Virus record (IMG/VR): IMGVR_UViG_3300044712_000810
Location: 186,001-250,000 of that record
DNA length: 64,000 bases
Direction: 5' to 3' (one strand)
Shown here one piece after another: positions 25,794 to 41,810 of this stretch (positions are counted from its first letter, which is position 1; each line of letters begins with the position of its first letter). A program made the position numbers and the translations under genes. The notes below the pieces were generated by a model that worked only from the letters and a program-made list of their open reading frames with translations, did no database searches and was not told the DNA's origin.

Positions 25794-25794
25794 G

Positions 25795-25818: not shown

Positions 25819-25824
25819 CAATTT

Positions 25825-26188: not shown

Positions 26189-27214
26189 TTATATCACCAC
26201 TTTTTGAACTCGAATATTACCAGCACCACCATTACCACCGGTAAAGTACCAATTATATCCTTGTGAATTACAGGAACTAGCGCCACCAGAACCACCATTT
26301 GCTCTTATTGTTCCAGAATTTGTATAATTACCAGTATATAATAGTGTAATACCACCGCCACCAGAACCACCACCGCCAGCAGATCTATGACCACCACATG
26401 CTGATCCACCAGGTGATCCATCAGATATAATAGCACCAGTTGATCCAATTATAATATTTCCATAAACAACAAAAATTAATGCGCCACCAGTTCCAGAACT
26501 TCCTGTGTATCCAGTTCCCATAGGTCCTGAATATGGTGAACCTCCTGGGTTACCAGCACCACCACCACAAGCATTTGCTCCAGCTGTTCCAGAACCCGCA
26601 TCGTTACCATTACCACCAGCACCACCATTAGCTACACCAGCACTACCAGAACATGAAGATGCTGGCCATCCTCTCCATGCACATTCCCAACCAGATGCTC
26701 CTCCACCAGATCCGCCAGAATAAATAGTTCCAGCCGAACCATTACCACCGGCATTTCCAATTCCACCACCGTTACCACCACCACCGCATAATCCAGTGTT
26801 AGTCGCAGCAGCGTAACCATGTGTATACCATGTTCCACCGGCTCCAGCACTAGTACTTAACCATTGTATATCACATGTTGAAACATCAGTTTGATGTAAC
26901 ATTTCTAATGTTTTAAGTTTTAATCCTCTATTAGTCCCAGTAGCTCTTGCGCCTCTAGCACTCATATTAATTACACCATTAACAACCAGATCACCTCTAC
27001 AAAATATATGTAGACCTTTACATCTATTAGATGTTGTAAGTGTAACACCTGAATTAACTGTAATACCATCATAATATAATTCAACTGGTGCACCATCTAA
27101 TGTCGATGTTAATGTTGTATTTGTTGTATATGTAATCTTTGGTAAAAATGTTTTATTTAACCATGGTTTTCTAATACTTGATGCTTTTTGCATAAATAAT
27201 GTTGTACTTGGCAT
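26189..27214 (-). CDS. Glycine-rich virion (tail-associated) protein
   Basis: Extensive GGGG/G.AG repeats, GGGGSGGG, ending GNIRVQKV. Confidence 0.7.
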   Translation of the reverse strand: MPSTTLFMQKASSIRKPWLNKTFLPKITYTTNTTLTSTLDGAPVELYYDGITVNSGVTLTTSNRCKGLHIFCRGDLVVNGVINMSARGARATGTNRGLKLKTLEMLHQTDVSTCDIQWLSTSAGAGGTWYTHGYAAATNTGLCGGGGNGGGIGNAGGNGSAGTIYSGGSGGGASGWECAWRGWPASSCSGSAGVANGGAGGNGNDAGSGTAGANACGGGAGNPGGSPYSGPMGTGYTGSSGTGGALIFVVYGNIIIGSTGAIISDGSPGGSACGGHRSAGGGGSGGGGITLLYTGNYTNSGTIRANGGSGGASSCNSQGYNWYFTGGNGGAGNIRVQKVVI

Positions 27215-27223
27215 AATATCACC

Positions 27224-27961
27224 TTACTTAAGATCAAGTCCTGCTGCAAATCCGTATATGTTTTGTCCACCATCATCAGAAACAAATACTAAACGATCTA
27301 TTCCAGCAGTAGTTAACGTTGGTTTTGTTCCACCACCCCATTTTACATTGGGTGACCAAGTAACAGTATATGCTCCACCATTAGCCATACTTAATACAAC
27401 AGATGCAGATTGTCCTTGTGAAGCACTTGGAAATCCACTAAAACTTATAGTACATGCACCGCCAATTGTTACCAATTGAACTACACCTTTTGTAATATCA
27501 ACTGTAAAACTTGATGTTTTTGTATTATTATTAAATACAGTTTCAGTATATTGTGTAAAACGTTGATTTAAAAATCCAGCAGAATCACTCATTGCAAATA
27601 TTAATGCTTTACCAGATGTTGGTTCAGAGAAGTTTAAAATAATACTATCATTATTAGAAAATGTTATAGTTGAAGGGAAGTTAATATCACCTTCTTCATC
27701 ATATACTACAACAATTAAATCTTGTGAGTTCAACCCGTGAACAATTGACCACGTGGATGTAACTGCTGTTTGAACATGTTTATAATGTTGATTTTCTCTA
27801 GTTAATGGACGCCATGCTTGGACTCCTTCTACTTCTGTCCAAATATATAAAACGCCGCCAACTAATGCGAATTGCCCAACAGTGGGTGAAGTCGGAAAAG
27901 TATCATTATCATTTTTGAGGATTAGTTTTCCTCTACATGTAAAATCTGCAAGAGCTTTCAT
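27224..27961 (-). CDS. Tail-fibre-related structural protein
   Basis: W.I.H.L motif; C-terminal VTW...VKW.GGTKPTLT..GIDRLVF..DGG domain; N-terminus paralogous to 39952..41727. Confidence 0.7.
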   Translation of the reverse strand: MKALADFTCRGKLILKNDNDTFPTSPTVGQFALVGGVLYIWTEVEGVQAWRPLTRENQHYKHVQTAVTSTWSIVHGLNSQDLIVVVYDEEGDINFPSTITFSNNDSIILNFSEPTSGKALIFAMSDSAGFLNQRFTQYTETVFNNNTKTSSFTVDITKGVVQLVTIGGACTISFSGFPSASQGQSASVVLSMANGGAYTVTWSPNVKWGGGTKPTLTTAGIDRLVFVSDDGGQNIYGFAAGLDLK

Positions 27962-28010
27962 TCATATCTCCTAAATTTAAAAAATAGGGGGATTTCTCCC
28001 CCACTCGACA

Positions 28011-28781
28011 TTATATTTCTAGTTTGAATCTAGATATATATTTTCTTGTTTGTGCAATAATATTAATACATTTATTATGATTATTAATAAAATAAATATC
28101 TTTTATATGTCCTTCTGGAATTGTATCAATATCATATTTTTTACCATATTGAATGTAATTAATAATATCAATTTGTTCAGGTATTGCACCAACAATTTTG
28201 TTCAGTGCAGATTCAGATAAAGTTGATACTGGATTGTTTGGTGTTAAGCTTAATGAATTCATAAATGTTTCATACCATTTAGAGAAGAATTTATCTTTTC
28301 TAAATGCACAAACAAATGAACTATCACATGCGGGTTGTTCTTTCCACCAATATGATGCGATTTTAGCAATTTTATTATATCCTGGTGACATTAATAATAA
28401 AGATGGTTCTTTAATTAATGTCATATCAAGATCTATATGAATTAATAAATCTTCTGTTAAATTATTATCAGCCCAAGCCATGACCAATGGTTTATTAAAG
28501 ATAGGATATTTAAAATTATCACTTGTAGATATTAATTCGGGAACTTCCATATATGTTACATTAAGTTCAGATAATTTTGCTTGTTGTTCATCGGTTAATG
28601 TATAACTAGATGGACATATAGCATAAATTGGAATATTTCTAAGTTCTCCAGCAAGTGATCTCCATGCAGTAAAACATACGATTGCATCTGATAACATTGG
28701 TGAATGTGGATTTTTTATACCATTTTCATCAACTATTGGTCTATTATAATTTTCAATAATTGTAACTAATGCTGGATTCAT
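28011..28781 (-). CDS. Putative glycosyltransferase (GT-A/GT8-like)
   Basis: FNKP..., LIHIDLDM (DxD) motif, ESAL. Confidence 0.5.
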   Translation of the reverse strand: MNPALVTIIENYNRPIVDENGIKNPHSPMLSDAIVCFTAWRSLAGELRNIPIYAICPSSYTLTDEQQAKLSELNVTYMEVPELISTSDNFKYPIFNKPLVMAWADNNLTEDLLIHIDLDMTLIKEPSLLLMSPGYNKIAKIASYWWKEQPACDSSFVCAFRKDKFFSKWYETFMNSLSLTPNNPVSTLSESALNKIVGAIPEQIDIINYIQYGKKYDIDTIPEGHIKDIYFINNHNKCINIIAQTRKYISRFKLEI

Positions 28782-28795
28782 TTTTTATCTCCAGA

Positions 28796-29443
28796 TTATA
28801 CATTTTCAAGATCAGATCTTGTAATTGAAGGAACTCCTTCAAGTTCTGCACCTGTGATTGCATTTAAATATACATTATAGGAATTTTCAATTGCGGCAAA
28901 GTCTGTACTTGTTTTAATAAAATCAAATACATTAAGTGCGTATTTATATACTTTAAATGTATAGTAGAAACGATCCATATTATTAATATGTTCTTCTAGT
29001 GCATTGATTGCCTCAATATTTCCACTTTGTAAAATTTCAGCTGTTTTGATTTCGCGATTTTCATCGGTGACAACATAACCTAAGTTGAATAACTTAGACC
29101 AAGACATAAGATATGCCCAAAAATAAGCCATACCCATTGGTCCAGTTGCCATTTGCATATGATCATAAATCTTTTCAACAACTGCACTTTTAATTGCCAT
29201 TAAATTATCACGAGATTCAAAAGTAAAATCTGTAGTGTTACTAACAATTTGACCAGCAACAACTTTTGATTTTAAAATTAATGCATCATTAGTAGGCAAT
29301 TGTGATTGAAGTAATTCAAATACTTCTTGTGAAATCTCAAATGCAAATTGTGTTGAATATTTAAATGATTGATCGACAGTCATAATTGACTGTATTAAAT
29401 ATCTATCACTGTGTTCTGAATTTTTAATTTTTGCAAGATACAT
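28796..29443 (-). CDS. Hypothetical protein
   Basis: AAGGAG SD; 215 aa, helical C-terminal half. Confidence 0.7.
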   Translation of the reverse strand: MYLAKIKNSEHSDRYLIQSIMTVDQSFKYSTQFAFEISQEVFELLQSQLPTNDALILKSKVVAGQIVSNTTDFTFESRDNLMAIKSAVVEKIYDHMQMATGPMGMAYFWAYLMSWSKLFNLGYVVTDENREIKTAEILQSGNIEAINALEEHINNMDRFYYTFKVYKYALNVFDFIKTSTDFAAIENSYNVYLNAITGAELEGVPSITRSDLENV

Positions 29444-29464
29444 ATTATTTATCTCCTTTATTTA

Positions 29465-29968
29465 TTATGCGCACCAGAAACACCAACAGTTTCCATGGCA
29501 ATCACTATGACAGTTACAGTTTCCATGACAGTTACTATGACAATCACCAGACCAGTTACAATCACTATGACAGTTACTATGACAGTCTGAGTGACAGTTA
29601 CTATGACAGTTTGAGTGACAGTTTGAATAATATGCATCACAAACACATGCAACTTCATCGGTATTAACATCAGACTTAATTAAGTTTAATGTAGTACCGG
29701 CGATAATTTCACCAGTAGAAACATTTGAATAACCAGTATGTGTTGCTATTGTTTCTGCTGCACTTCTAAGATTGTTAGTATCTGTTGTTGGAATAATTGT
29801 TCCAACTGTTGGTGACGGTATAGAAGATGTTGCCAATCCTCTACGAGTTTGTTCACGAACAATTGCATTCGCGACTTCAATATATGCGCCAGTTTGAATC
29901 ATACTTCCAGTACTTGTACCATAAGACCACACGGTGGCATTTGATGCACAAGGAGGTATTCTACCCAT
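29465..29968 (-). CDS. Protein with C-terminal (CHxx)n Cys-His repeat, candidate radical SAM substrate
   Basis: CVCDAYYSNCHSNCHSNCHSDCHSNCHSDCNWSGDCHSNCHGNCNCHSDCHGNCWCFWCA; N-part has repeated G.II....N.(L/I) units. Confidence 0.75.
   Translation of the reverse strand: MGRIPPCASNATVWSYGTSTGSMIQTGAYIEVANAIVREQTRRGLATSSIPSPTVGTIIPTTDTNNLRSAAETIATHTGYSNVSTGEIIAGTTLNLIKSDVNTDEVACVCDAYYSNCHSNCHSNCHSDCHSNCHSDCNWSGDCHSNCHGNCNCHSDCHGNCWCFWCA
29488..29625 (-). repeat. 12-bp tandem repeat encoding CHS(N/D)
   Basis: Plus-strand (A/G)TGACAGTTACT-like units repeated about nine times. Confidence 0.85.
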
Positions 29969-31202
29969 TATTATACTCCTTTTTAATATTTATAAATTCG
30001 TTCTTTTTATGTGATATAATTCTATTTAATATACATACACGTTGTTCAACGTTAAAATCATACCATTTATCATAATAATTTTCTTTATTGCTGGCATCAT
30101 ATTTATCTTTATTACATTTTACACAATATAAAGGTGAACAGTCGACACATTCATCATCTAGTTTTGTTGATGATTCATATTTATCATGTTCCATTTTACT
30201 CTTCATGAGATCATTATAGAAATCTAATTCTATATGTGATATCATATGATCTTTTTTATTTGGAGTATATAATGTTCCATGACACTTATATATAAATCCA
30301 TCAATATCTATTGTAAATAAATCTTTACCAGCAAAACAATTACCTATTTGTTTTTTCTCTAGTAACCATGAAAAGAATGGTTTGACATTACGATCCTTTT
30401 CCCAACGATCAAGTTCGAAGTGCATTATCTTATATATCTGTAATTCAAGATTATGTAATGCAAATCTAAATGATTTTTTGTCAAGTGCTGTAACAGATTG
30501 GCCACGTTCTAATGTTGGGCAATAGCCTTTCATTATATGTGGTGCATCAGGGAATGAATTCTGTAAATCATATATATCACAATATGATTCATATACGTAA
30601 TTTACACTTTTTAATGGTATTGTGCTTTTGATTGAATGTACAACGCCATATTTCATACAGTTTATAATATTTTCACGGACTTTGTCGCCGCAGATTCTAT
30701 TGTATTCGTTAATTGGATTACCATCGTAACTTATTTGAGTTATAAGTTTAGGTTCTCCAAATGCAGTCATGTGTTTTGAATAAAAAATCATATTCTCAAA
30801 AATATTTTCTAAATATATTCCATTAGTATATAGTGTGAATTCTACATTTTTAAAGTTTAAGAAGTATCGTAACATAAATTTGATTGCTGGATAATTTAAT
30901 GTAGGTTCGCCACCCCAAAATGTAATATTTAATACATCATAATTCTGTTTAAAATGATCAGTTTTAACTAATTGTTCGAGTTTATAACAAGTGAGATATA
31001 TTTGATCTTCACTAAAATAAAGTTTATCAAAATGTCCTTTCTCAAAACAATAAGAACATTTAGAATTACAGTCATTTGTAAGATTTATTTCAATTGTTAA
31101 ACGTCTAAGATTTGGTTTATTTGTAAATTTTGGTTTTTGATATAAATCTAACGCTGATGATATATATTTACGAAGTTCATCTTTATAATTAAATTCTAAC
31201 AT
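29961..31202 (-). CDS. Radical SAM/SPASM protein (anSME/peptide maturase-like)
   Basis: CNSKCSYC, FWGGEPTL, YTNG, CFAG..DG.IYKCH, C..C....C..C. Confidence 0.9.
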   Translation of the reverse strand: MLEFNYKDELRKYISSALDLYQKPKFTNKPNLRRLTIEINLTNDCNSKCSYCFEKGHFDKLYFSEDQIYLTCYKLEQLVKTDHFKQNYDVLNITFWGGEPTLNYPAIKFMLRYFLNFKNVEFTLYTNGIYLENIFENMIFYSKHMTAFGEPKLITQISYDGNPINEYNRICGDKVRENIINCMKYGVVHSIKSTIPLKSVNYVYESYCDIYDLQNSFPDAPHIMKGYCPTLERGQSVTALDKKSFRFALHNLELQIYKIMHFELDRWEKDRNVKPFFSWLLEKKQIGNCFAGKDLFTIDIDGFIYKCHGTLYTPNKKDHMISHIELDFYNDLMKSKMEHDKYESSTKLDDECVDCSPLYCVKCNKDKYDASNKENYYDKWYDFNVEQRVCILNRIISHKKNEFINIKKEYNNG

Positions 31203-32143
31203 TTCTTAAAGCTCCCAATCTCACTACCTTGATTATTGCATAAGTTACGGTAATTTTTAAAGAATACAGATTGATATGTATTATATTTAGGTCTTGCTCG
31301 AACACCTTCTTGTGGGACTAAATATATATCATTTGTCATCTTTGTAAGTTTAATACATTGATGTTCACAAATAGAACATACTTCCTGACACATTTTGATT
31401 TTGTATTTCTTGTATATTTTATTCATGTAACATGCTTCAAGAATATCTTTCAATTGATATGCATCAGCATCAGGATGATGATTATCTATTTCATTCCAGT
31501 TATGTGTAATAGAAAATCTATGAACATTCGGATAATATTCACACATATAAACCATATCATGAACAATATGATCTATATTTTGTTTATTTACAGTATATGC
31601 AATACCATAACGAATACCAGAATGTTTTAATATTTCTAATGCTTCTTCGATTTCTGATTTAGCTGATTGTTTATTTCCACGCCAAATACGTCTATCAGAA
31701 TGTGGACCATCATAACTAACTTGAACTAGAAATGTACTATTGTGTTTTGATGTAATTCTTTTATTTAATTCTAATAACTCATTGATATATTTCTTTACTA
31801 ATATACCATTAGTTTCTATCATAATATTCAAGTATCCATCTATTTTTGCGAATACTTGTTCCATAGTATATAATATAGTATCCATTCGCAGTAATGGTTC
31901 GCCACCAAAGAATAATAAACCAGTAGGTCCTTTAGTTCCTTCGCGTTTGATTATATTATCAATAAATGCATCAACTTCTTCTTTTGATGCATCGCGTTGG
32001 TAATCACCAAGTTCTTGTCTTTTTTCTTCTTCAAAACAATATTCACATGCTAAGTTACAACGAGTTGTAACATATATAATATTCATTTGGTGGCCGGTAA
32101 TCTTACTAGCATCTTCTTCAAATATTTGAGACGCTTTAACCAT
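31196..32143 (-). CDS. Radical SAM protein
   Basis: CNLACEYC, FFGGEPLL, ETNG, SYDG; short Cys cluster CQEVCSICEHQC. Confidence 0.9.
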   Translation of the reverse strand: MVKASQIFEEDASKITGHQMNIIYVTTRCNLACEYCFEEEKRQELGDYQRDASKEEVDAFIDNIIKREGTKGPTGLLFFGGEPLLRMDTILYTMEQVFAKIDGYLNIMIETNGILVKKYINELLELNKRITSKHNSTFLVQVSYDGPHSDRRIWRGNKQSAKSEIEEALEILKHSGIRYGIAYTVNKQNIDHIVHDMVYMCEYYPNVHRFSITHNWNEIDNHHPDADAYQLKDILEACYMNKIYKKYKIKMCQEVCSICEHQCIKLTKMTNDIYLVPQEGVRARPKYNTYQSVFFKNYRNLCNNQGSEIGSFKKC

Positions 32144-32152
32144 GAATTACTC

Positions 32153-32839
32153 CTACAAATATTTTAACAACTTGTTCTTATTTCCAAGTGTAAAAGTTGA
32201 TGTTTTAACTGCTAAATACATTAATGATACTAGGCGCGGATGTGTTAGTTTTATTTTTGATAGATTTGGTTGAATGATTGTATCAAAATATTTAATAACA
32301 TCATCTTCTACTGCTGTTTTATCTTTACACAGTGCAATAAAGTATGAACTAATTAAATATGATTTACGACTATCTTCATTTATTGTTATTAAATATTTAA
32401 CAATAGCATCAAATCGTCTATTATTAAGTAATATTTTATATTTAATACAATACCTATCAAGATAATACATTATACCATCAAACAATGCATTATCTGGAGC
32501 ATCACCAGACTTAATTATCTCTTCAACATATGATGTTGAAATATCAAAGTTATTAAGATTAACTAGACAAAACAAAATATCATGTAACCAATCACTTTGT
32601 GTGTATTTATCTTTTATTAATGTTTCTTTATTTACATTAAGAAAAGTGAGCGCATCATCAAATTTATTTTGATTTATAAGATCAAAATAATAATTAAACT
32701 TATCATTTCCACGTTTAGAGCTTAGATCTTCATGAATAATTTTCTTTTGCCAATCTTTTAAATATTTAATTGTAAACTTAATAAGTTTATTATATTTACC
32801 TGTATAAAATTCTGATTCATCCATAACTCTATTAATCAT
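32153..32839 (-). CDS. Hypothetical helical protein
   Basis: GGAG SD; 228 aa within the radical SAM cluster. Confidence 0.65.
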   Translation of the reverse strand: MINRVMDESEFYTGKYNKLIKFTIKYLKDWQKKIIHEDLSSKRGNDKFNYYFDLINQNKFDDALTFLNVNKETLIKDKYTQSDWLHDILFCLVNLNNFDISTSYVEEIIKSGDAPDNALFDGIMYYLDRYCIKYKILLNNRRFDAIVKYLITINEDSRKSYLISSYFIALCKDKTAVEDDVIKYFDTIIQPNLSKIKLTHPRLVSLMYLAVKTSTFTLGNKNKLLKYL

Positions 32840-32852
32840 TTTATTATCTCCA

Positions 32853-33437
32853 TTACTTAGTTTGGGACAACTGTTCCTTCACATAAGCGATAATAGCGTT
32901 TACTTCATTTTCGCATTCCGCATCTTGTTCTTTTGTGAGTCGAACCATTGGTCCTTTAATTCTTGCTTCTTTATTAATCCATGTATTCGAAGTGACACCT
33001 TCGTGACCACTTACTTGTAAATATGCTGCAACTTGTGGTGCAGGTTTGGTTTCTGGAATATATTTTAAACTTCCATCAGGATTTCTATCAGCGAATTTTT
33101 TGACCGGCTCTGGACATTGTGGACATCTTTCAACTGGATCATCACCACAATTACATGAACGTTTTTCAGGAACTACCGTTGGTGGTGTTTTTGATGGACA
33201 TGCACTACAACCAACAACTTCATCTGGTCCGTTTTTGGCATTTTGTTCTGCACAATCACACGAACCAAATGCTTTAGTAAATTCATAATTATAATCAAAT
33301 TCTGCACCAACTGTTTTAGCGCAGAAAAACATAATAGTTTCTGACATCATTGGATTTTTATCTTTGAAATACATTGCACCTTTCATTAAACTAGATAGTG
33401 CATCTAACATTTCGTCTGGGATTTGTCTTTCTTCCAT
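32853..33437 (-). CDS. Hypothetical Cys-cluster protein
   Basis: CDC, CSAC, CNC, CPQC in low-complexity centre; GGAGG SD. Confidence 0.65.
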   Translation of the reverse strand: MEERQIPDEMLDALSSLMKGAMYFKDKNPMMSETIMFFCAKTVGAEFDYNYEFTKAFGSCDCAEQNAKNGPDEVVGCSACPSKTPPTVVPEKRSCNCGDDPVERCPQCPEPVKKFADRNPDGSLKYIPETKPAPQVAAYLQVSGHEGVTSNTWINKEARIKGPMVRLTKEQDAECENEVNAIIAYVKEQLSQTK

Positions 33438-34543
33438 GATTTCTGTCCTCCAAATTTAGTGATTTGATCTGTAAAATATTTCTGGAATGGTTCAAAATCT
33501 TTAAGTAGATCAAAAAGTCTTAAAGATTCACGAATAGTAATTTTAGTTACTTCACAAAAACCATCTAATGGTTCTTTAATCCATTCACCATCACACTGTT
33601 TTAATTCCTGATTAAGACATCCTGTCATACAAACAAATTTAACTTCACAATCTTTGCATTTAGGAACAAAATCAGGGACTAATATATCAGGTCTAGAAAA
33701 TAAATCCATATTTTCAGGATACCATTCATTTGTTCTATAATTTAATATAGGATATTTATGTTCATGTGCAAATCTTCCACATGGATATGCATTTCCATCT
33801 GGAAAAAATGATATCATCCATGAACATGCTTCACATGCTCTTATTGATTTATTCCTAGATCCTAAAGCCAGCATAAATTCAAGTTTCTCTCGAAACATCG
33901 TTGGCATATTAGGTATTCCAGATTTCCAATATTCTACTATTTTATCAACTAATTGAGGACATGTTTTATTAAAAGTTTCAACACCTTCGGGTGTCCAACC
34001 TTCTTTAATAAAAGCAAAATCCATAAATGGCCATTGCAATCCTTCAATAAAAAAACGATAGTTGTCAACTAATGTTGACACATTATCATTGGATACCATA
34101 CAACGTGAACGTCCAAATTGTTTAAAGAATTGTATACGTTTCATATATTCAGTAAATGAATCTCCACCAGTTTGTAATGGTCTGTTGGTTTTATTCCAAA
34201 GTCCATCAAAACTTAATGTGAATCCAACATCGTGTGATTTAAGGTAGTCAAACTTCTCTTGATCCATTAATAGACCGTTGGTTGGGAATATAATACGAAC
34301 AATTCTTTCATCTTTGCCATATGTTTCAATGAAATATTTAATCAAATCATATCGAATCAATGGTTCACCACCAAAGAAAGCAATGACGGCAGTTTTATGA
34401 CCATAAACTCGTAAATATTCATCAAGATTAGACACGATTGTATCTAAATCTTCTTTAGTCATGTCATCTTTATCATGCTCAATATAACAATATTTGCAAT
34501 TCAAATTGCATTTTTGTGTTAGAATTACTTGTAATGTTAACAC
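33404..34543 (-). CDS. Radical SAM/SPASM protein (anSME/peptide maturase-like)
   Basis: CNLNCKYC, FFGGEPL, PTNG, SFDG, C..DG.AYPC, CKDC....VCMTGC. Confidence 0.9.
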   Translation of the reverse strand: MLTLQVILTQKCNLNCKYCYIEHDKDDMTKEDLDTIVSNLDEYLRVYGHKTAVIAFFGGEPLIRYDLIKYFIETYGKDERIVRIIFPTNGLLMDQEKFDYLKSHDVGFTLSFDGLWNKTNRPLQTGGDSFTEYMKRIQFFKQFGRSRCMVSNDNVSTLVDNYRFFIEGLQWPFMDFAFIKEGWTPEGVETFNKTCPQLVDKIVEYWKSGIPNMPTMFREKLEFMLALGSRNKSIRACEACSWMISFFPDGNAYPCGRFAHEHKYPILNYRTNEWYPENMDLFSRPDILVPDFVPKCKDCEVKFVCMTGCLNQELKQCDGEWIKEPLDGFCEVTKITIRESLRLFDLLKDFEPFQKYFTDQITKFGGQKSWKKDKSQTKC

Positions 34544-34555
34544 ATATACTCCTAT

Positions 34556-34816
34556 TTATTCACCATGACATGCAGTGTGACAATCTACATAAGGACCCAT
34601 ACATTCACATGTTTCATATTGTTCTTGAATTATTACATCTGATTTTTTATTATGGGCATCATATAATACTACAACTTTGATATATTCCATATGAGGACCA
34701 ATAAGACATTCAAATTTTGTATTTGAAAATCCATCTTTGATTTTCTGAATATAAGCTAACATTTTATCATGCGGCATACTTTTTTTAGGAATTAAAAATT
34801 CAGTAATAAGTTCCAT
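34556..34816 (-). CDS. Small protein with C-terminal CEC...CHTACH motif
   Basis: Ends TCECMGPYVDCHTACHGE. Confidence 0.65.
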   Translation of the reverse strand: MELITEFLIPKKSMPHDKMLAYIQKIKDGFSNTKFECLIGPHMEYIKVVVLYDAHNKKSDVIIQEQYETCECMGPYVDCHTACHGE

Positions 34817-36042
34817 TACAAACCTCTAAATTTTAAATATTCATCACGAAACTGATGTCGATAACAATCATTACAATTCTTACACTCATCAGGAAGTCTT
34901 TCTTTACCAAACATTGCACGACGTAAGTGTTGATATTCTAAACTATTCCATGCACTAAATATATCAGTACATGTATTTATATTTAATTCTTTATCAATTT
35001 CACTTAAATCATTAAAATATTGCAATGTACTACAACATGGTCTAACATTTCCTTTCGGATCAATATTAAACCGTGTCCACGGCGCATAACACCATGGCTC
35101 TTTTATTTCTTTATCTTTTAATTCGGCATAATATTCTTTTATTAAATCATTTATATGCCTATTAGGTAATGTTTTATTATATTTTTGTTTTGGTATTTTG
35201 GCCAAAAAATCTATATAAGGATTAGTTTTTGGAATTTCAATCTTATTTACTTCAATGTTTTTTGGTATTTCATAAACATAAGTATAAACTGAATTTCGAC
35301 GTTCATTTCGAATGAAATCAAGTTCAGTACTACTAAAATTATTAAATGTCATTGGAATATCGCGAACTTCATTATAGAAATTATTTAATACGTATAAATC
35401 TGTATCATCTATTTCATATTTCTTAAGTTCTTTCCAAAATCTACATTTTTGAAGTAACATTGTACTTGCTTTATATTCTTTACATATTTTATAGAATTCG
35501 TCTAAATACATTATACTATATTTAGTTATTAACATACTTAAAATTAAATTTACATTTGGTAGTTCTTTTTTAAGTAATTTTAGATTATATAAAACATTAT
35601 CTAAATTACCACCTCTTGTTTTCTCATATAAATCTTTTGAAGGTGCATCAATACTAACAATCATTGATTTAACATTTTCAAAATGTTTCAATTCGACCGT
35701 ATGAAACAATGTGCCATTTGTAGTTATATGGACATTATTGTTAGCATATGCTACGGTTGCCTGTAATTGTGGGTCAAGAAATGGTTCACCTTCAGCAGTT
35801 ATAAGAATGTGTTCACAGTTTTGTAAGAATGGTAATATTTTCAATTCAAAATTCATAGGTAATGCCATTCTTCGAAAATGACTATTGTCAGTATTTGAAT
35901 ACTTTGAATAATATGGACAATGAACACATCTAAGATTACATTTATTACTAACAAATAACATTAAACTTTGTGGATAACTATATATTATTTCTTTTTGTAA
36001 TGCAATCTCAAATAGATTTAATACTTTTAGTTTATCATTCAT
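34816..36042 (-). CDS. Radical SAM/SPASM(Twitch) protein, paralog of 5087..6337
   Basis: CNLRCVHC, EGEPF, TTNG, CYAPW..RPCC..CKNC. Confidence 0.9.
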   Translation of the reverse strand: MNDKLKVLNLFEIALQKEIIYSYPQSLMLFVSNKCNLRCVHCPYYSKYSNTDNSHFRRMALPMNFELKILPFLQNCEHILITAEGEPFLDPQLQATVAYANNNVHITTNGTLFHTVELKHFENVKSMIVSIDAPSKDLYEKTRGGNLDNVLYNLKLLKKELPNVNLILSMLITKYSIMYLDEFYKICKEYKASTMLLQKCRFWKELKKYEIDDTDLYVLNNFYNEVRDIPMTFNNFSSTELDFIRNERRNSVYTYVYEIPKNIEVNKIEIPKTNPYIDFLAKIPKQKYNKTLPNRHINDLIKEYYAELKDKEIKEPWCYAPWTRFNIDPKGNVRPCCSTLQYFNDLSEIDKELNINTCTDIFSAWNSLEYQHLRRAMFGKERLPDECKNCNDCYRHQFRDEYLKFRGL

Positions 36043-37700
36043 TATTCAAACCTTGTAGGTTTAATATTTAATTGTTTTTGAGCGTTGGTAATATACTCAT
36101 TATCTTTTCGATAATATGTTTTGATAATATCCATAACATGTTGTTTATTTTTACAACATTTATATAATGCGAACAATAAATGTTGTGGTATACCGCGATT
36201 GTATGGTATTAATAAATCAAATGCTGATTTATAAAGTCCTTTTTTATATCTTTCAATTTGATCATAATCAAATCTTTTTGATTCACGATATAAATCATAA
36301 TGAAATGTAACATTCTTTTCATTATTGTCTGTCAATACTTTATCATCTCCATCAAAGTTTTTATGTTTTTTGATAAAGTGTACTGGATCTATAATTAAAT
36401 CATACTTTTCTGGATTTGTGTAAAATTCGCTATTATATGTTAGATAAAAACTATTGATTGCCACTGTATTTACTATTTCTATATTTTTTAAGATAAAGTG
36501 AATTGTTTCACTAGTCGAATGTTCATCATCGTATGGTAAACCAAATATAAAGTTCAATAAAGTCCATATACCAGATTTATGGCACCAATAAGTACCCTCA
36601 AGTATTTGATCTTTAGTAACACCTTTATTAATATATTTTAACATACGGTTATTAACACTTTCTGCACCAAATGATAAATGTCTACATCCGGCTTCATAAC
36701 ACATTTTAAAGAAATCTTCATCAACAAACTTATACTGACATGAATTTGACCAAGTAACTTGTTTCATATTCTTACGAATAAACCAATTACACATTTCATC
36801 AGCAATCTTTCTTGATGGATTAATACATGTATCTTTAAAGAATATATTATTTACACCTTGATCAACTAATCGTTCAATATTATCAAATATATCTTGTGAT
36901 TTACCACGATGATAAGTCGCAGTTGATGAACTACAAAATGCACACTTATTAGTACATCCGTAAAATGTATTAAAAGATGCTTGAAAAAACCAATCAGATG
37001 GTATATTAAGACCTTCTTTTGGTATATTGTAATAATCGAGTATATAATTATAACTATATTTTAAATCTTGTGTATTTTTTGGTAAAATGCTAGACATGCG
37101 ATGTTCTTTATGTAAGCGTCCAGCATTTCCAACTTTATTATCGACTAATAATTGACGTAAAGCTTCTTCATTTGGAATAGTACCAATATGAAGTATATCA
37201 ATAAATGATTTATCTTCTAACTTTTTAATATGTGTTTGTAACATTGATGCGTTATAACCACCAACAACAATTTTTGAATCTGGATATACATACCTTAACC
37301 ATTTTAACAACATGATATTAAGATAACTGGTTGGTGATATATCTATTGTTGGAGCATCTTGATATGATACAATGGATGCTAATATATATTTATATTTTTT
37401 ATGTAGATTTAAATTATTATCTACAATGTTATGTATTTTAGCTGGCCATAATGGATGTTTGAATAATTCTATGGCATTATCAAAATCATGTGGATATTTA
37501 AAATTTTCACAAAAGTTTTCAAATGTAGTATATTTCTTTAATAAATATGCATCAAAATCATAATAATCTATATTATGATCTGATTTTAAATACTCTGCAA
37601 ACATTGCAGGAGCATAATGACTAAACTTTAATGGCTTATATAATGGATTTTCATATGTAAATCTTGTCGGCATTGATAAAATTAAAACGTCCGCTTTCAT
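36042..37700 (-). CDS. B12-binding-domain radical SAM protein (class B methyltransferase-like)
   Basis: N-terminal ~240 aa with KIVVGG; GCTNKCAFC, F.D, AGC..FGAES, FIFGLP; start set at MKADV. Confidence 0.8.
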   Translation of the reverse strand: MKADVLILSMPTRFTYENPLYKPLKFSHYAPAMFAEYLKSDHNIDYYDFDAYLLKKYTTFENFCENFKYPHDFDNAIELFKHPLWPAKIHNIVDNNLNLHKKYKYILASIVSYQDAPTIDISPTSYLNIMLLKWLRYVYPDSKIVVGGYNASMLQTHIKKLEDKSFIDILHIGTIPNEEALRQLLVDNKVGNAGRLHKEHRMSSILPKNTQDLKYSYNYILDYYNIPKEGLNIPSDWFFQASFNTFYGCTNKCAFCSSSTATYHRGKSQDIFDNIERLVDQGVNNIFFKDTCINPSRKIADEMCNWFIRKNMKQVTWSNSCQYKFVDEDFFKMCYEAGCRHLSFGAESVNNRMLKYINKGVTKDQILEGTYWCHKSGIWTLLNFIFGLPYDDEHSTSETIHFILKNIEIVNTVAINSFYLTYNSEFYTNPEKYDLIIDPVHFIKKHKNFDGDDKVLTDNNEKNVTFHYDLYRESKRFDYDQIERYKKGLYKSAFDLLIPYNRGIPQHLLFALYKCCKNKQHVMDIIKTYYRKDNEYITNAQKQLNIKPTRFE

Positions 37701-38406
37701 AAGACTTCCTATACTCAAGCATAATATGTTCACTGATATCTTTTACATACTTACAAAAAGTAGAATATGATAAACCTCTATTTTCAATTTGAATACAATA
37801 ATTCAAATTTCCAAAATGTTTTCGATCATGTGATACTGATATTATATAATTCATTTGTGTATGTCCACATTTATTCATAGCTTCTGACATTAATTGATCA
37901 AATACATACAAATCATATGAACTTGAATAAAAAATTACATATAATACACATCGATTATGACCTTCACATGATGATATTGTCTTCATTCCACAAATAAGAT
38001 TGATTGCATCACATAAAGGTTTAACATTTTTATCTATTTTATTTTTAGTATCGATATTTATCATATAATTTGGTCCAAACAAATCACCACTTGATGTTTG
38101 TTGTGGTAAATATTCACGATATTTAACTTGTTCATCGTCAGTTAATCTACGAATTTTAACATTATCAATACTTTTTAGAAATGTTTCCAAAAATGCTTTA
38201 AGTTTATCACCAAATAGTTCCGAAAATGGTGAAACAAAACAAACATTTTCAAAAATATGAACAAATTCTAAATCTTTATCATAATCTTCAGGAAATTCAC
38301 CAATATCAACTATAAATTTATTAAGAAGATCATTTAATTGATCTTTCCATTCATAATTTTCAGCAAATATTACAAACATCCGTCTAAATTCACAAATAGT
38401 TATCAT
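37651..38406 (-). CDS. Hypothetical protein with TYW3/Taw3-like T.SSC.GH motif
   Basis: IDKNVKPLCDAINLICGMKTISSCEGH resembles the D..I..L...IN...TTSSCSGR signature. Confidence 0.45.
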   Translation of the reverse strand: MITICEFRRMFVIFAENYEWKDQLNDLLNKFIVDIGEFPEDYDKDLEFVHIFENVCFVSPFSELFGDKLKAFLETFLKSIDNVKIRRLTDDEQVKYREYLPQQTSSGDLFGPNYMINIDTKNKIDKNVKPLCDAINLICGMKTISSCEGHNRCVLYVIFYSSSYDLYVFDQLMSEAMNKCGHTQMNYIISVSHDRKHFGNLNYCIQIENRGLSYSTFCKYVKDISEHIMLEYRKSYESGRFNFINADKIYI

Positions 38407-39902
38407 AAAACCTTCCTGTAATATTTATCAATCATATCTCTAACTATAGTTTTATCATTATACATATCATAAAGTGCAAATATTAAATGTTGTGGTACAC
38501 GCATATGATATGGATTTAGATAATTAAGAGATATATTGTGTAATTTTGTTTTATATTCTTCAATTTCATGAAAGTCGAGTCTATCAATTTCGCGATATGC
38601 GGGATATTGAAACTCTGTAGTTGGGTCTTCTTCAGGTTTGACTTGTAAAGTCTTGTCCTTATTCAATGATGGAATACGAACAATCGACACATTTTTATTA
38701 AATTCAAGACCATACTTGTGTGGGTTTTCATAAAAATCACTACCGGCGGTCATATAAAACCGACTAAGTGTAATTTCATCAATATGTTTTATATTTTTCT
38801 TTATTAGAGCAATAGTAGTGCCAACTGTTGTTTCATCATCATATGGAAACCCAATAATAAAATTAAGTAAATTCCATATACCAACTTCACTACTATCCTT
38901 AGTACGTTCAAGTATTTCATCTCTGTTTGTATTCTTATTAATATATTTCAACATATCATTATGAAGACTTTCAGCGCCAAAACATAGTATTCGGCAACCG
39001 GCATCATATAACATATGAAAAAAATCTTTACTAGTATTATGAAAACAACATGAATTTGACCATTTGATATTCAAATTCTTTTTAATAAACCAATTACATA
39101 ATCTTTCGGCATATTTTATAGATGGATTAACAGAACTATCTTTAAAGAATAAAGTATTTACACCTTGATCATATAATTTTAATATACAATCATACAATTC
39201 ATTCTCATCTGGTATACACAATTTACTTTGTTGCCGACAGTAGGCACATTTATTGGGACAACCACGAAATGATATGATTGATGATTGAAAAATGTATTTA
39301 TTTGGATTTGGCCGAAGATCTGGAAATCCATATTGATCTAAAATTTCTTTATATGAATATCTTAAATCATTTTGATTTTCAGGTAATATACTTGTGTAAA
39401 AATCATCTACATGATTATGGTTATTTGTACCATTTAATAAATTGTCAAGATCACACTTATCGTTGATATTTTTATTATATATAATATCAACGATATTTTT
39501 ATTAATATTTTTTTGTATCTTCAATGCTTCTTTTCCACCAACTATTATTTTTGCTGATGGGAATCGTTTTCTTAAATACTCTAAAATTAAAATATTCAAG
39601 TCAATTGTCTTATTTCTTCCCATCGAATGATCTTGACGATGAGGCAGACAAGAACATAATATATAATTGTATGATTCTTTTAAATTTAAAGAATCAAACA
39701 TTTCATTCAAATTTATATTATTACAATTTTGATATCGTTTTGATAATAATACATCAAGATCGTAATAATCAACAACATCATCTTTTAAGTATTTAGCAAA
39801 AAGAGATAATGCGTAACTACTAAATCTCATTGGAACTGAATTAATTTCATTTTTATCTAATGTAAATAAACAAGGCATAGTTAATAATAAAAACGTACGC
39901 AC
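38403..39902 (-). CDS. B12-binding-domain radical SAM protein (paralog of 36042..37700)
   Basis: KIIVGG, RGCPNKCAYC, AGC..FGAES, FIIGFP; GTG start behind AGGAGG. Confidence 0.8.
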   Translation of the reverse strand: MRTFLLLTMPCLFTLDKNEINSVPMRFSSYALSLFAKYLKDDVVDYYDLDVLLSKRYQNCNNINLNEMFDSLNLKESYNYILCSCLPHRQDHSMGRNKTIDLNILILEYLRKRFPSAKIIVGGKEALKIQKNINKNIVDIIYNKNINDKCDLDNLLNGTNNHNHVDDFYTSILPENQNDLRYSYKEILDQYGFPDLRPNPNKYIFQSSIISFRGCPNKCAYCRQQSKLCIPDENELYDCILKLYDQGVNTLFFKDSSVNPSIKYAERLCNWFIKKNLNIKWSNSCCFHNTSKDFFHMLYDAGCRILCFGAESLHNDMLKYINKNTNRDEILERTKDSSEVGIWNLLNFIIGFPYDDETTVGTTIALIKKNIKHIDEITLSRFYMTAGSDFYENPHKYGLEFNKNVSIVRIPSLNKDKTLQVKPEEDPTTEFQYPAYREIDRLDFHEIEEYKTKLHNISLNYLNPYHMRVPQHLIFALYDMYNDKTIVRDMIDKYYRKVL

Positions 39903-39951
39903 AACTCCTCCTAAATTGGGTGGACCCAAACAAGCGTCCACCCTTCACACA

Positions 39952-41727
39952 TTAACTAGCTGAATATAACCATGTTGTTCCAGAATAAATAAACTCTACT
40001 CTGGCCCATGCAACGTCAACTGTAAGATCTTCTGCGACACCGCGAATGGTTGAACCATTGCGTATAACTATAATATTGTTTGTAGCAAACATGCCTTTTT
40101 CATCTATTAAACATACACGATCACCTTGTGATGGTGATGCTGGAAGCGTAAAGTTAAAACCAGCAGTTGTTGTATCAGCAATAACATAATCTGATGCGAC
40201 TGCTGTATATGCTGCGCTTTTCTTAAGAATTGTCCAACCACCGCCGCCACCAGATGCTGAAACAACTCCAGATCCATCAATTGAAAGACCTGAACCAATT
40301 TTAATAACACCGGCAACCGATGCTGATGCAGTTGGAAGTGTTGCTGAAGTTAATACATCATTTCCACCAACTTGAAGTTTAGTTCCTGTCCAAGTAATGT
40401 TTGATGATGTTGTGAACTTTCTTGTTGAGTTATCAAAGTATGGAACACCATTATTTACTGGTGAATCTTCACGTGTGGCAACAACTTGTTGATCATTTAC
40501 CATACCAACTGTAAATGCATCTTTTGTTTCATCGAAAATAAATTTATAATCGGTGAGTGTTCCACGATCAACTTGAATACCAGCTTCACCATTTGTTACG
40601 CCGGCTCCAGTTTCACCAGAGTTTACTTCAATTAAGTTATCTTTTGCTGTAATTGAAGTAGTATTAACAGTTGTTGTTGTTCCACTGACTGTTAAGTTAC
40701 CTGTAATTGTTACATCACCAAGACCTGTGATTGTTTTTCCAGTAAAGTCAACAGGTGAATTAAATTTAACGGTTGATGCATTAAAGTTAGTTTCGCCTAT
40801 TGAAGTGAATTGTACTTGTGAACTTGTACCAGAAGCAACAAAACTAATAATACCACCGGATGATTGGTTTTGGAAAAGAATGTTTTTATTTGCATTATTT
40901 GATGGGACTGTTGTTTCGACTCCACCCTTAGCATTTGTTGTAACAGTAGAATCGGAAAGAAGATTTACATCACCTGTTCCAGTAGTTTTAACTGCTAAAT
41001 CTTGATCTATATCTGTTTTAATTGTAATGGTATTTGAAACATCTTCGATAACTTTCTTATCGTTAACATAAAGTGAACTTGCGCCAACACGAACTTCTGC
41101 TGCATAAATGTTAGCAAAACGATTTGTTGCAGACCCAAGGTTACGTGTATTATCACCATCAGGTAAAATATTACCAGTTACACGGTATGAACCATCAAGT
41201 TGATCTACTGCATCAAGAACACCAGTTGTTGCACCAATAGATAGATTATTACCAACTTTAACACCACCAAGTGCTGTTGCTGTTGCGATTGGTAATGTAT
41301 ATGAACCACCGCCAGTGCCAGTTCCCATACCAGCATAAGAATCACTAGCAGCAAAAACTACTGCTTTACCTCTTATTGCTTCTGTGAAACTTAAATTAAG
41401 ACTATTGGCATCAATAAAACTTGGTTGTGTATTTTGTAATTCATCATTTTCATCATATGCAAAAATACCAACAAGTTTACTATTTAAATTGTGTGTAATT
41501 TGCCATAGTGTTGATAGTGTTTCTTGTGTATGAATATAATATAGCGCTTTATTTGTGAGTGGATACCAAGTTGCAGTTCCTCCAATATTTGCATAAATAT
41601 AGAGGACTTGTTCCATGAAACATATTTGGCCGATTGTTGGTGAATCAGGAAATGAAGTAACATTGTCGAACATTACTGTTGCACCAGCTTTCATCTTTAA
41701 ATTCGCGCGTGTATTTAATTGTGCCAT
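39952..41727 (-). CDS. Tail-fibre protein
   Basis: YTLPIAT..LGGVKVG and LPTAS..GVIKIG repeats, LGS...RF..IY, GNLTVSGTTTTVN..DN.I, C-terminal F..TLPASP..GD domain. Confidence 0.8.
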   Translation of the reverse strand: MAQLNTRANLKMKAGATVMFDNVTSFPDSPTIGQICFMEQVLYIYANIGGTATWYPLTNKALYYIHTQETLSTLWQITHNLNSKLVGIFAYDENDELQNTQPSFIDANSLNLSFTEAIRGKAVVFAASDSYAGMGTGTGGGSYTLPIATATALGGVKVGNNLSIGATTGVLDAVDQLDGSYRVTGNILPDGDNTRNLGSATNRFANIYAAEVRVGASSLYVNDKKVIEDVSNTITIKTDIDQDLAVKTTGTGDVNLLSDSTVTTNAKGGVETTVPSNNANKNILFQNQSSGGIISFVASGTSSQVQFTSIGETNFNASTVKFNSPVDFTGKTITGLGDVTITGNLTVSGTTTTVNTTSITAKDNLIEVNSGETGAGVTNGEAGIQVDRGTLTDYKFIFDETKDAFTVGMVNDQQVVATREDSPVNNGVPYFDNSTRKFTTSSNITWTGTKLQVGGNDVLTSATLPTASASVAGVIKIGSGLSIDGSGVVSASGGGGGWTILKKSAAYTAVASDYVIADTTTAGFNFTLPASPSQGDRVCLIDEKGMFATNNIIVIRNGSTIRGVAEDLTVDVAWARVEFIYSGTTWLYSAS

Positions 41728-41785
41728 AAAAATATCTCCTATTAAATTATTATTTGTTCATTTATATAAACTAATAAAAAAAATT

Positions 41786-41810
41786 TGATCTTGGGAAACC
41801 CCAAGATCAA
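41786..41810 (-). terminator. Terminator hairpin
   Basis: TTGATCTTGGG-AAA-CCCAAGATCAA with T-run on minus strand. Confidence 0.65.

Follow-up and report, generated by a model that had tools for sequence, protein, structure and literature searches.

A recurrent phage cassette of radical SAM enzymes and a Cys-repeat protein next to tail-fibre genes, and its possible role in protein cross-linking

A 315-kb phage carries, inside a tail-fibre operon, six intact radical SAM (rSAM) genes together with a 167-aa protein that ends in Cys/His repeats, and the same enzyme-plus-substrate cassette recurs next to tail-fibre genes in many unrelated large phages. The window analysed is a 64 000-nucleotide stretch of the IMG/VR virus record IMGVR_UViG_3300044712_000810 (positions 186 001 to 250 000 of that record); the phage is known only from a rhizosphere metagenome. 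The first-pass annotation described these genes between two tail-fibre genes and proposed that a RiPP-like maturase set crosslinks or methylates a virion component. The gene content is confirmed here, and the comparative evidence supports this interpretation, although all of it is genomic inference and neither the modification nor incorporation into the virion has been demonstrated.

The unit comprises 14 co-oriented genes from 41727 to 28011, all on the minus strand, separated by at most 21 nt or overlapping. It is bracketed by terminator-like hairpins on the same strand: an 11-bp stem followed by a T-run at 41785–41810, between ORF 41818–42084 and the first fibre gene, and a G5/C5 stem followed by a T-run at 27982–28006, immediately after the last gene. 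The unit starts with a 591-aa tail-fibre protein (39952–41727), which matches the phrog_21918 N-domain and phrog_972 (tail fibre proximal subunit); in tblastn searches it hits tail-fibre proteins of jumbo phages. The next unit starts with a second tail-fibre protein of 245 aa (27224–27961, minus strand; phrog_21918, phrog_9017 and phrog_7760), which shares its N-domain with the 591-aa fibre. It is followed by a Gly-rich 341-aa protein (26189–27214, minus strand).

Pfam Radical_SAM (PF04055) scores above its gathering cut-off for six genes (38403–39941, 36042–37733, 34816–36042, 33404–34543, 31196–32143 and 29961–31202), all of which keep the CX3CX2C motif. The first two, of 512 aa and 563 aa as listed, have class-B (B12-domain) families as their best NCBIfam hits: PhpK, BzaD and HpnJ for 38403–39941, all below their cut-offs, and PhpK, HpnJ, BzaD and the RiPP C-methyltransferase among those for 36042–37733; BchE is also among the hits to this pair. 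The alignments reach N-terminal of the rSAM core, and the closest solved structures are TsrM (6WTE) and AprD4 (6FD2). The B12-binding model of Pfam did not hit, and the description of these genes as B12-type in the first-pass annotation is therefore better read as class-B-like. The true start of 38403–39941 may be a downstream Met, and that of 36042–37733 is uncertain because it overlaps the upstream gene, 37651–38406. The latter codes for a 251-aa protein with a borderline TYW3-like motif (PF02676, 26.8 bits against a cut-off of 27) and has no PDB relative.

The four other enzymes are SPASM/twitch-like to different degrees. Pfam SPASM (PF13186) is above cut-off for the 408-aa enzyme encoded at 34816–36042, which has a 40% identical paralogue at 5087–6337 in a second fibre cluster and no close homologue elsewhere. 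The 379-aa enzyme at 33404–34543 carries CX2CX5CX3C and aligns end to end with PapB and anSME models; its best NCBIfam hit is the PapB family (E 1e-37, but 130 bits against a cut-off of 340). Its closest solved structure is CteB (5WGG), aligned from CteB residue 103, that is, after the RRE of CteB. The 315-aa enzyme at 31196–32143 has only a CX3CX2CX3C cluster, in addition to a Fer4_12 match. The 413-aa enzyme at 29961–31202 has a near-threshold TIGR04085 hit (24.4 bits against a cut-off of 27) and hits to PapB, FlmE/OhkG, SCIFF and CXXX-repeat maturases, all far below cut-off. The PapB family is the best NCBIfam model for three of the four. No curated maturase family threshold is reached, and the chemistry therefore cannot be read from homology.

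The 167-aa protein (29465–29968) is the only member of its family in the genome, and the stop of 29961–31202 overlaps its start by 8 nt. Its last 61 residues hold 16 Cys and 9 His, with nine C-x-x-x-C units (four CHSN, three CHSD and two CHGN), and end in CWCFWCA. Within the repeats Ser is coded by both TCA and AGT, and His by both CAC and CAT; the repeat is therefore kept at the protein level and is not a simple DNA repeat. A homologue with 55% identity keeps it. In the AF2 model the N-domain (residues approx. 10–110) is predicted to be a folded, helical module of about 100 aa with pLDDT about 90, whereas the Cys/His tail (residues approx. 107–167, about 29465–29650) is below 50. The same module is found inside FN3/LamG multidomain proteins. 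It is not a short leader, in agreement with the first-pass annotation, although a long N-terminal domain does not by itself rule out a leader.

An 86-aa protein (34556–34816), whose start overlaps the stop of the rSAM gene upstream, ends in two CHxx-like units and is a possible second small substrate; no family hit and no homologue in related loci were found. A 194-aa Cys-rich accessory protein (32853–33437) has no BLAST-level homology, but small proteins in the same position follow the orthologous rSAM in two related loci (L062 and L064, see below) and share an N-terminal helix plus a CxC segment. A 228-aa helical accessory protein (32153–32839) is 31% identical to a homologue in locus L019; its ESM Atlas structural neighbours are TPR proteins with TM about 0.5, which is only a lead. 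A 215-aa accessory protein (28796–29443) has homologues following the CXXX gene in L019 (36%) and L064 (30%), and a similar protein follows it in L065 by eye, without a BLAST hit; a weak phrog_25260 hit and weak Atlas neighbours hint at a tail protein or assembly chaperone. The last gene (28011–28781) codes for a 256-aa protein that matches phrog_23758 (E 1e-16) and has no Pfam hit. It is 38% identical over 94 aa to gp088 of Campylobacter phage CP220, annotated with a nucleotide-diphospho-sugar transferase (GT-A) superfamily hit; a glycosyltransferase-like function is plausible but not proven.

The Cys-tailed protein belongs to an unnamed family of at least 58 cluster representatives, which share the N-domain and a Cys-repeat tail with the consensus C-[HY]-[SG]-[ND]; only Cys is invariant, and some subfamilies (CSGSC) lack Asn/Asp acceptors. 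There are 11 distinct loci that encode the N-domain type (loci are designated L followed by a number), and every one has rSAM genes beside it. When the search starts from the substrate, L009, L012, L019, L020, L025/L028 and L026 all have one to six adjacent rSAMs. When it starts from the enzyme 29961–31202, which has 126 homologues, its orthologues are followed by a CXXX-tailed protein in L062, L064, L065 and L066, as in L019. The association persists in deeply diverged loci (25–37% identity). Orthologues of 33404–34543 are 29–34% identical in L062, L063, L064 and L066, and 31196–32143 is 62% identical in L019 and 26–33% in L062, L063, L064 and L066. L066 also holds orthologues of both class-B-like rSAMs (38403–39941 is 34–37% identical to two rSAMs that flank the CXXX gene there), a homologue of the Gly-rich protein and, with an rSAM in the slot occupied by the TYW3-like protein in the window, a YcaO. 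The presence of this peptide-backbone-modifying enzyme argues for protein modification and against DNA or cofactor chemistry. There are exceptions: L063 keeps the three rSAM orthologues without a Cys-repeat gene within 8 kb, and a bacterial CHSN protein (L051) has no rSAM within 10 kb as judged with a custom HMM.

The cassette sits beside tail-fibre genes in at least eight loci. In addition to the window, L009 has Peptidase_S74 and G2 matches, L015 has giant proteins with fibre repeats, L020 matches a long-tail-fibre PHROG (E 2e-32), and homologues of the 591-aa fibre head the orthologous cassettes L062, L064 and L066. In L043 the CHSN tail is fused to a tail-fibre-repeat protein (E 2e-14). 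In L064 the CXXX protein ends in SDERLKKDIIYL, at the start of a Peptidase_S74 fibre chaperone: the next ORF matches Peptidase_S74 positions 15–54 above cut-off. The protein of the window itself has no fibre repeat and no S74 domain.

The best explanation, which we favour with only moderate confidence, is that the unit is a tail-fibre operon carrying a RiPP-like protein-maturation cassette whose substrate is the 167-aa protein. The N-terminal domain would serve as the handle: the enzymes lack an RRE, so they probably dock on this domain, which probably also attaches the protein to the fibre. The disordered tail would be the modified part. The three conserved SPASM-type enzymes (33404–34543, 31196–32143 and 29961–31202) most likely convert the Cys thiols into irreversible thioether cross-links to the Asn/Asp three residues downstream; these would be ranthionine-type links, each costing 2 Da. 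The two class-B-like rSAMs and the TYW3-like protein would add further decoration, most simply C- or N-methylation (+14 Da), and the 408-aa rSAM may act on the adjacent 86-aa protein or on fibre proteins. In the absence of proteomic or mass data, the modified residues, the type of bond and the presence of the protein in the virion are inferred.

No paper describes this cassette, but related systems are known. In Methanococcus voltae, CrpC, a SPASM rSAM encoded beside the Cys-rich protein CrpA, installs ranthionines on C-terminal repeats with a C-X-X-(Q/D) motif, close to the C-X-X-(N/D) motif here, and is engaged by the N-terminal domains of its substrate (PMC13692751). That system is archaeal and chromosomal, with a single rSAM that has an RRE, a 17-residue repeat and no link to a virus or to fibre genes. 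Among the ranthipeptide maturases PapB (freyrasin) and CteB (SCIFF), PapB cross-links Cys to Asp/Glu in Cys-Xn-Asp motifs with n = 0–6 (PMC9413430), a range that covers the i to i+3 spacing seen here. In the phage, however, the acceptor is mostly Asn, the substrate is a protein with a predicted folded domain in a fibre operon, and the cassette has several rSAMs. The CXXX-repeat peptide system has tandem Cys-every-fourth repeats next to a SPASM rSAM, and an ESM Atlas neighbour cluster carries the corresponding Pfam 38.1 family of rSAM targets in 19 per cent of its members. Its maturase model TIGR04115 scores only 62 and 35 bits against a cut-off of 350, no protein of the cluster matched any other NCBIfam model of that system, and we found no functional paper on it.

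QhpD installs Cys-Asp and Cys-Glu thioethers in QhpC, a subunit of quinohemoprotein amine dehydrogenase that stays part of a larger assembly (summarized in PMC13692751), and its model gives a weak hit here; this bacterial periplasmic subunit has three cross-links, a leader plus RRE, no repeats and no viral context. The unit [HY]-[SG]-[ND] also fits the aromatic-X-X motif of the triceptides (HaaB, HtkB, YhhB), in which an aromatic ring, including His C2, is linked to the beta carbon of the third residue (PMC11499958). The YhhB, FxsB, AmcB and DynA models hit the core enzymes weakly, with no threshold reached, and Cys, the only invariant residue here, has no role in triceptides; this may be an alternative or additional chemistry. 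Finally, Campylobacter phages CP220 and CPt10 carry 11–12 rSAM genes of unknown role, in an exchangeable module with GT-like genes near a tail-fibre gene, interpreted at the time as metabolic (PMC2853527). The relationship is distant (CP220 gp099 is about 30% identical to 31196–32143). No Cys-repeat gene lies in the 18.5 kb inspected.

It is possible, although unlikely, that the cassette makes a diffusible RiPP-type product, such as a bacteriocin-like, signalling or metal-chelating peptide, with the N-domain as a long leader comparable to those of Nif11 or NHLP, the modified tail being cut off or released at lysis and the proximity to tail fibres reflecting only late expression. A conserved N-part followed by a variable Cys-rich C-part resembles leader and core, multiple rSAMs plus a YcaO (L066) are typical of RiPP clusters, the Atlas neighbours include clusters with the CXXX-repeat target family, and bacterial CHSN proteins with signal peptides lie next to rSAM/SPASM genes. 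However, none of the conserved cassettes has a protease, an exporter or an RRE, and there is no double-Gly type junction before the repeats. The occurrence of the N-domain in large FN3/LamG proteins, the fibre modules joined to the Cys tail in relatives and the recurrent tail-fibre adjacency also speak against this possibility.

More doubtful is the possibility that the tail is simply a metal-binding element (Zn, Fe or Ni) of a fibre-associated protein, in the manner of the His-metal sites that appear to be common in trimeric phage fibres, and that the rSAMs act on the fibre proteins themselves, on a glycan made with the GT-like gene or on another small protein of the cluster. The abundance of Cys and His in the tail, the GT-like gene, the paralogous rSAM in a second fibre cluster that has no Cys-repeat gene, and the rSAM clusters of L063 and CP220 are compatible with this view. 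On the other hand, His is replaced by Tyr in about a fifth of the C-x-x-x-C units scored (H 96, Y 28 at +1) and whole subfamilies have no His, which fits poorly with a conserved metal site; moreover, the substrate–enzyme adjacency, including overlapping stop and start codons, persists across many diverged loci, and the nearest relatives of the enzymes modify Cys-containing peptides. A role in DNA, nucleotide or cofactor modification, for example of a deazaguanine type, with the Cys-repeat gene as an unrelated neighbour, is very unlikely: large phages do encode rSAMs for nucleoside chemistry, weak QueE-like PHROG hits and the borderline TYW3-like hit are present, and Campylobacter phages with many rSAM genes also have modified DNA (PMC2853527; 10.1101/2023.04.13.536721), but the unit has no nucleotide-metabolism genes and lies within fibre rather than replication modules, the best enzyme matches are all peptide or protein maturases, the pairing with the Cys-repeat gene is conserved from both search directions, and an orthologous cassette contains a YcaO.

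The recurrence of the cassette next to tail-fibre genes suggests that phages chemically cross-link a tail-fibre-associated protein the way bacteria mature peptide natural products. We propose that the matured protein is built into or onto the tail fibre, where a covalently stapled, reduction- and protease-resistant Cys/His tip would serve as a rigid or adhesive element.

The window (bases 186001–250000) belongs to a 314,837-bp IMG/VR virus record that has direct terminal repeats and is estimated to be complete. G+C content is about 30 per cent, and the only sequencing run that holds the sequence is a rhizosphere metagenome. As in many jumbo phages, an RNA-polymerase beta-like subunit is encoded: the 654-aa protein at 58883–60847 (+ strand) is 24–31% identical to proteins annotated as phage multisubunit RNA polymerase beta or beta' subunits, which fits a jumbo phage with its own transcription apparatus. 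Among 50,697 deposited phage genomes, no record resembles the cluster at the DNA level (megablast of the whole cluster) or the Cys-repeat protein at the protein level (tblastn), and a tblastn search with a further protein query, P0062, also found nothing.

All the ORFs named in the first-pass annotation, which had described six radical SAM (rSAM) genes and a Cys-repeat protein between two tail-fibre genes, exist and lie on the minus strand. The six rSAM genes score 36–66 bits against the gathering cut-off of 29.5 of Pfam Radical_SAM (PF04055), and each keeps the CX3CX2C motif. Two of them, 38403–39941 and 36042–37733, called B12-type in that annotation, are better described as class-B-like: their best NCBIfam hits are class-B (B12-domain) families (PhpK, BzaD, HpnJ, BchE, RiPP C-methyltransferase), with alignments that start 100–150 residues before the rSAM core, and TsrM and AprD4 are the nearest solved structures, but all scores are below the cut-offs and the Pfam B12-binding model itself did not hit. 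The other four are SPASM/twitch-like, although to different degrees. Pfam SPASM (PF13186) is above its cut-off for 34816–36042 (33 bits against 21.5); 33404–34543 has a textbook CX2CX5CX3C motif and aligns end to end with PapB and anSME; 29961–31202 has a near-threshold SPASM hit (24.4 against 27 on TIGR04085); and 31196–32143 has only a short CX3CX2CX3C cluster. A homology search with the 408-aa enzyme 34816–36042 returned only itself, and a search for related loci with 33404–34543 alone found no viral relative. An eighth rSAM gene of the genome (G000:C1:272501–272887, a 336-aa frame) lies outside the window, on the + strand and away from the fibre clusters.

The protein encoded at 29465–29968 has 16 Cys and 9 His in its last 61 residues, arranged in nine C-H-[SG]-[ND] units. 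The repeat uses non-interconvertible Ser codons (TCA and AGT) and both His codons, so it is maintained at the protein level. Both genes flanking the cluster hit tail-fibre PHROGs and share an N-terminal domain. The gene described as glycosyltransferase (GT)-like has no Pfam hit; its product is 38% identical over 94 aa to gp088 of the Campylobacter phage CP220, which is annotated as a nucleotide-diphospho-sugar transferase fold.

From the 591-aa fibre gene (41727) to the GT-like gene (28011) there are 14 co-oriented genes, and every junction is an overlap or a gap of at most 21 nt. The stop of the rSAM gene 29961–31202 overlaps the start of the Cys-repeat gene by 8 nt. Terminator-like hairpins with T-runs lie just upstream of the fibre gene (41810–41785) and immediately after the last gene (28006–27982). 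The cassette is therefore most simply read as transcribed together with a tail-fibre gene. A scan for sigma-70 promoters was no better than shuffled sequences. Another strong hairpin (11 bp, 7 GC), reported on the + strand at 25794–25819, lies between the converging genes ending at 25793 (+) and 25825 (−), and may act in both directions. Within the unit, the 86-aa protein at 34556–34816 (− strand) holds two CHxx-like units at its C-terminus (CHTACHGE); it is translationally coupled to the 408-aa rSAM upstream and may be a second, minimal substrate, but has no homologues in the related loci.

The Cys-tailed protein is a member of a family. A word-indexed search found 14 relatives, and a profile search of 1.84 billion representatives found 58 at E <= 1e-3. 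Members are mostly 110–170 aa, with a conserved N-part of about 95 aa and a C-terminal Cys repeat of one of several kinds: C[HY]S[ND], CNCN[HY]xC[ST] or C[ST]G[ST]. Over all C-x-x-x-C units the consensus is C-[HY]-[SG]-[ND] (H 96 and Y 28 at +1, S 110 and G 39 at +2, N 97 and D 28 at +3), and only Cys is invariant. An AF2 model from a 10-sequence alignment was unusable (pLDDT 46); with a 52-sequence alignment, residues ~10–110 are predicted as a three-helix module at pLDDT about 90, whereas the Cys tail stays below 50. Foldseek found no match to the module among solved structures in the PDB, and only uncharacterised viral proteins in BFVD. In AlphaFold DB clusters, however, the same ~100-residue module (rmsd 2.4–2.9 Å) is embedded in large FN3, LamG and P-domain proteins, and at the sequence level it also appears in P0047, P0050 and P0059, three proteins from the profile search. 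It is thus a real domain of extracellular-type proteins and, as the first-pass annotation had supposed of the N-terminal part, not a short leader.

The pairing of this protein with rSAM genes was first examined from the substrate side, in loci (designated L plus number) recovered by homology to the Cys-tailed protein. Genuine N-domain members are accompanied by six rSAM genes and a second paralogous CXXX protein in L009, by four rSAMs, one fused to a SAM methyltransferase, in L012, by two rSAMs in L019, which is syntenic with window 32839–28796, by four in L020, and by six rSAMs and two CXXX proteins in L026; in L025 and L028, contigs of about 1 kb, an rSAM starts right after the gene. The two paralogues found together in some phage cassettes (L009:4951–5394 and L026:5191–5610) share the N-domain but have different tails (CHSN or CYSN against CSGSC-type), and each lies next to its own rSAMs. 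A 'long type' of about 200–260 aa, with the CHSN tail ending in RGRR-like residues, shows the same pattern: five to six rSAMs directly downstream in L021, three downstream in L043, one before the contig ends in L058, and two within 4 kb in L015. Bacterial chromosomal proteins with a signal peptide, CHSN/CHGN repeats and a conserved GSRGWR or SSRSWR C-terminus were found in L017, L018, L032 and L051. In L017 (6259–16956) they lie beside three to five uncurated rSAM/SPASM genes and next to type IV pilus and T2SS genes (PilS, T2SSE, T2SSF), but L051 shows no rSAM within 10 kb by our own HMM. Several metagenome 'hits' to CHSN (L037, L042, L049, L055 and L057) are frames through DNA repeats with no N-domain, and were discarded.

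The same association was recovered from the enzyme side. The rSAM just upstream of the Cys-repeat gene has 126 homologues at E <= 1e-8, and two of their contexts, L062 and L064, are orthologous cassettes. Their order is a fibre/spike protein (36% identical to the 591-aa fibre of the window), two further proteins, an orthologue of 33404–34543, a small Cys-containing protein, an orthologue of 31196–32143, an orthologue of 29961–31202 and then a protein with the family N-domain and CNCNYxCT repeats. In L064 a homologue of the 215-aa protein of the window follows, after a short S74 ORF, whereas the L062 contig ends inside the CXXX gene. L065 repeats the last part of this order. In L066, the CXXX gene is directly followed by genes for a 512-aa and a 503-aa rSAM that are 33–37% identical over nearly their full length to both class-B-like enzymes of the window; a YcaO (L066:8690–9658) and the orthologue of 31196–32143 lie between them, and the window has a TYW3-like gene in the slot comparable to that of the YcaO. 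So the class-B pair belongs to the same system, and a peptide-backbone-modifying enzyme can be part of it. One counter-example exists: L063 has the three rSAM orthologues followed by a GT-like protein and a DnaJ protein, with no Cys-repeat gene within 8 kb. A DnaJ (J-domain) gene follows the cassette in both L019 (4271–4864) and L063 (10128–10820); the unit of the window has none.

The link to tail fibres is also found outside the window. L009 has Peptidase_S74 and Peptidase_G2 proteins upstream, L015 has fibre-repeat and Big_2 proteins of 1118 and 1634 aa immediately upstream, and L020 has a long-tail-fibre distal-subunit homologue (E 2e-32) next to the first rSAM and another fibre downstream. 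In L043 the CHSN-tailed protein is itself made of tail-fibre repeats (phrog_7389, E 2e-14) and follows another fibre protein. L062, L064 and L066 have homologues of the fibres of the window. The S74 chaperone domain is absent from the Cys-repeat protein of the window, but in L064 (9136–10129) the Cys-repeat protein, whose last residues are SDERLKKDIIYL, ends with the first ~12 residues of a Peptidase_S74 intramolecular chaperone ('chaperone of endosialidase'). The rest of the domain is a separate, out-of-frame 96-aa ORF that matches profile positions 15–54 above the gathering cut-off (24.2 bits against 22) and aligns with the S74 part of the L009 protein; this is either a split gene or a frameshift. 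The Cys repeat therefore stands exactly where a trimeric fibre shaft precedes its intramolecular chaperone, and P0055 and P0057, two further proteins from the profile search, end in the same way.

The window also holds a second fibre cluster (11328–2124, − strand), with three paralogous proteins of 480–496 aa, then an rSAM/twitch enzyme (5087–6337, 416 aa, 40% identical to 34816–36042), then three paralogous proteins of 321–335 aa, of which the two scanned carry a Phage Tail Collar domain. An rSAM is thus embedded in a fibre cluster that has no Cys-repeat gene. On both sides of this cluster (35–2112 and 11388–12536, − strand) at least ten tandem small genes (79–140 aa) share a similar C-terminal ending (YQK/MQK-hydrophobic-LLELI-like), which suggests a multi-copy paralogous family of unknown function.

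What the enzymes do cannot be read from homology, as all curated maturase models score far below their cut-offs. The three core enzymes reach 130, 61 and 52 bits against 340 for the PapB-family ranthipeptide maturase (NF047865). The maturase of CXXX-repeat targets (TIGR04115) gives 62 and 35 bits against 350, although an adjacent protein with tandem C-x-x-x repeats, as expected of a CXXX-repeat system, is present. The His-Xaa-Ser system is not supported either: the repeat is C-H-S-N, with no H-x-S register, and HxsB and HxsC score 77 against 370 and 19 against 268 bits. The best-supported guess rests on the following points. Cys is the only invariant residue of the tail, and the nearest characterised relatives of the enzymes (PapB family; CteB structure) make Cys thioethers. 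PapB accepts Cys-Xn-Asp with n = 0–6 (PMC9413430). In the one proven case of rSAM cross-linking of a Cys-rich protein, the repeats carry C-X-X-Q/D and the enzyme uses N-terminal domains of the substrate (PMC13692751), which closely parallels C-X-X-[ND] plus a folded N-domain here. Finally, the phage enzymes lack an RRE: the cluster motif starts at residues 10–45 of the four SPASM-type enzymes, the alignment to CteB begins at CteB residue 103, and there is no PqqD or RRE hit. We therefore propose thioethers from the Cys sulfur to the beta carbon of the Asn/Asp at i+3, forming up to nine small rings, although the modification itself, the type of bond and the presence of the protein in the virion are inferred.

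The unit [HY]-x-[ND] also fits the aromatic-X-X motif of triceptide cyclophane synthases, which include His-modifying enzymes (PMC11499958), and this is an alternative or additional reaction for one of the rSAMs. The class-B pair would most simply methylate, since the NCBIfam names of their weak hits include RiPP C-methyltransferases and the methyl-coenzyme M reductase glutamine C-methyltransferase. The 228-aa protein of the unit looks TPR-like and the 215-aa protein has weak tail-protein or assembly-chaperone leads, but both are leads only.

Among the other explanations, a diffusible RiPP with a long leader is not excluded. It lacks an RRE, a protease and an exporter: no peptidase or transporter family appears in any of the 14 genes, nor in the called genes of L009, L012, L019 or L062–L066, although one upstream ORF in L043 matches a PHROG annotated 'peptidase'. 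This explanation is also hard to square with the fibre fusions. A pure metal-binding tail is weakened by the frequent replacement of His by Tyr and by subfamilies without His. DNA or cofactor chemistry has almost nothing in its favour.

The individual pieces are of known kinds: rSAM/SPASM maturases, CXXX-repeat targets (a TIGRFAMs-era bioinformatic family) and protein ranthionines (QhpC, CrpA). What we could not find described in the literature searched is the cassette as a conserved component of tail-fibre modules of large phages, with RRE-free enzymes and a folded handle domain. The Campylobacter phages CP220 and CPt10 were reported in 2010 to carry 11–12 unexplained rSAM genes (PMC2853527), and two genes of the present cluster have distant homologues there. 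A broader reading is possible, but remains tentative: large phages may use rSAM (and in some lineages YcaO) chemistry to staple a dedicated Cys-repeat module covalently onto their host-recognition apparatus. This would be a family-wide RiPP-like post-translational maturation of virion proteins, with the repeat type (CHSN, CNCNYxCT, CSGSC) and the enzyme set co-diversifying as part of host-range evolution. It would be the first case of rSAM cross-linking of a virus particle component, and might also explain the multi-rSAM clusters of Campylobacter and other large phages.

rSAM/SPASM cross-linking is known for small secreted peptides and for very few proteins (QhpC; CrpA in 2026). If a widespread family of large phages applies the same chemistry to a tail-fibre-associated protein, this would add a new class of virion post-translational modification, give a function to multi-rSAM clusters in phage genomes that have been unexplained since 2010, and offer RRE-free maturases that act on a folded protein handle, which is useful for protein stapling. 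It would also point to a new variable in phage host recognition and particle stability.
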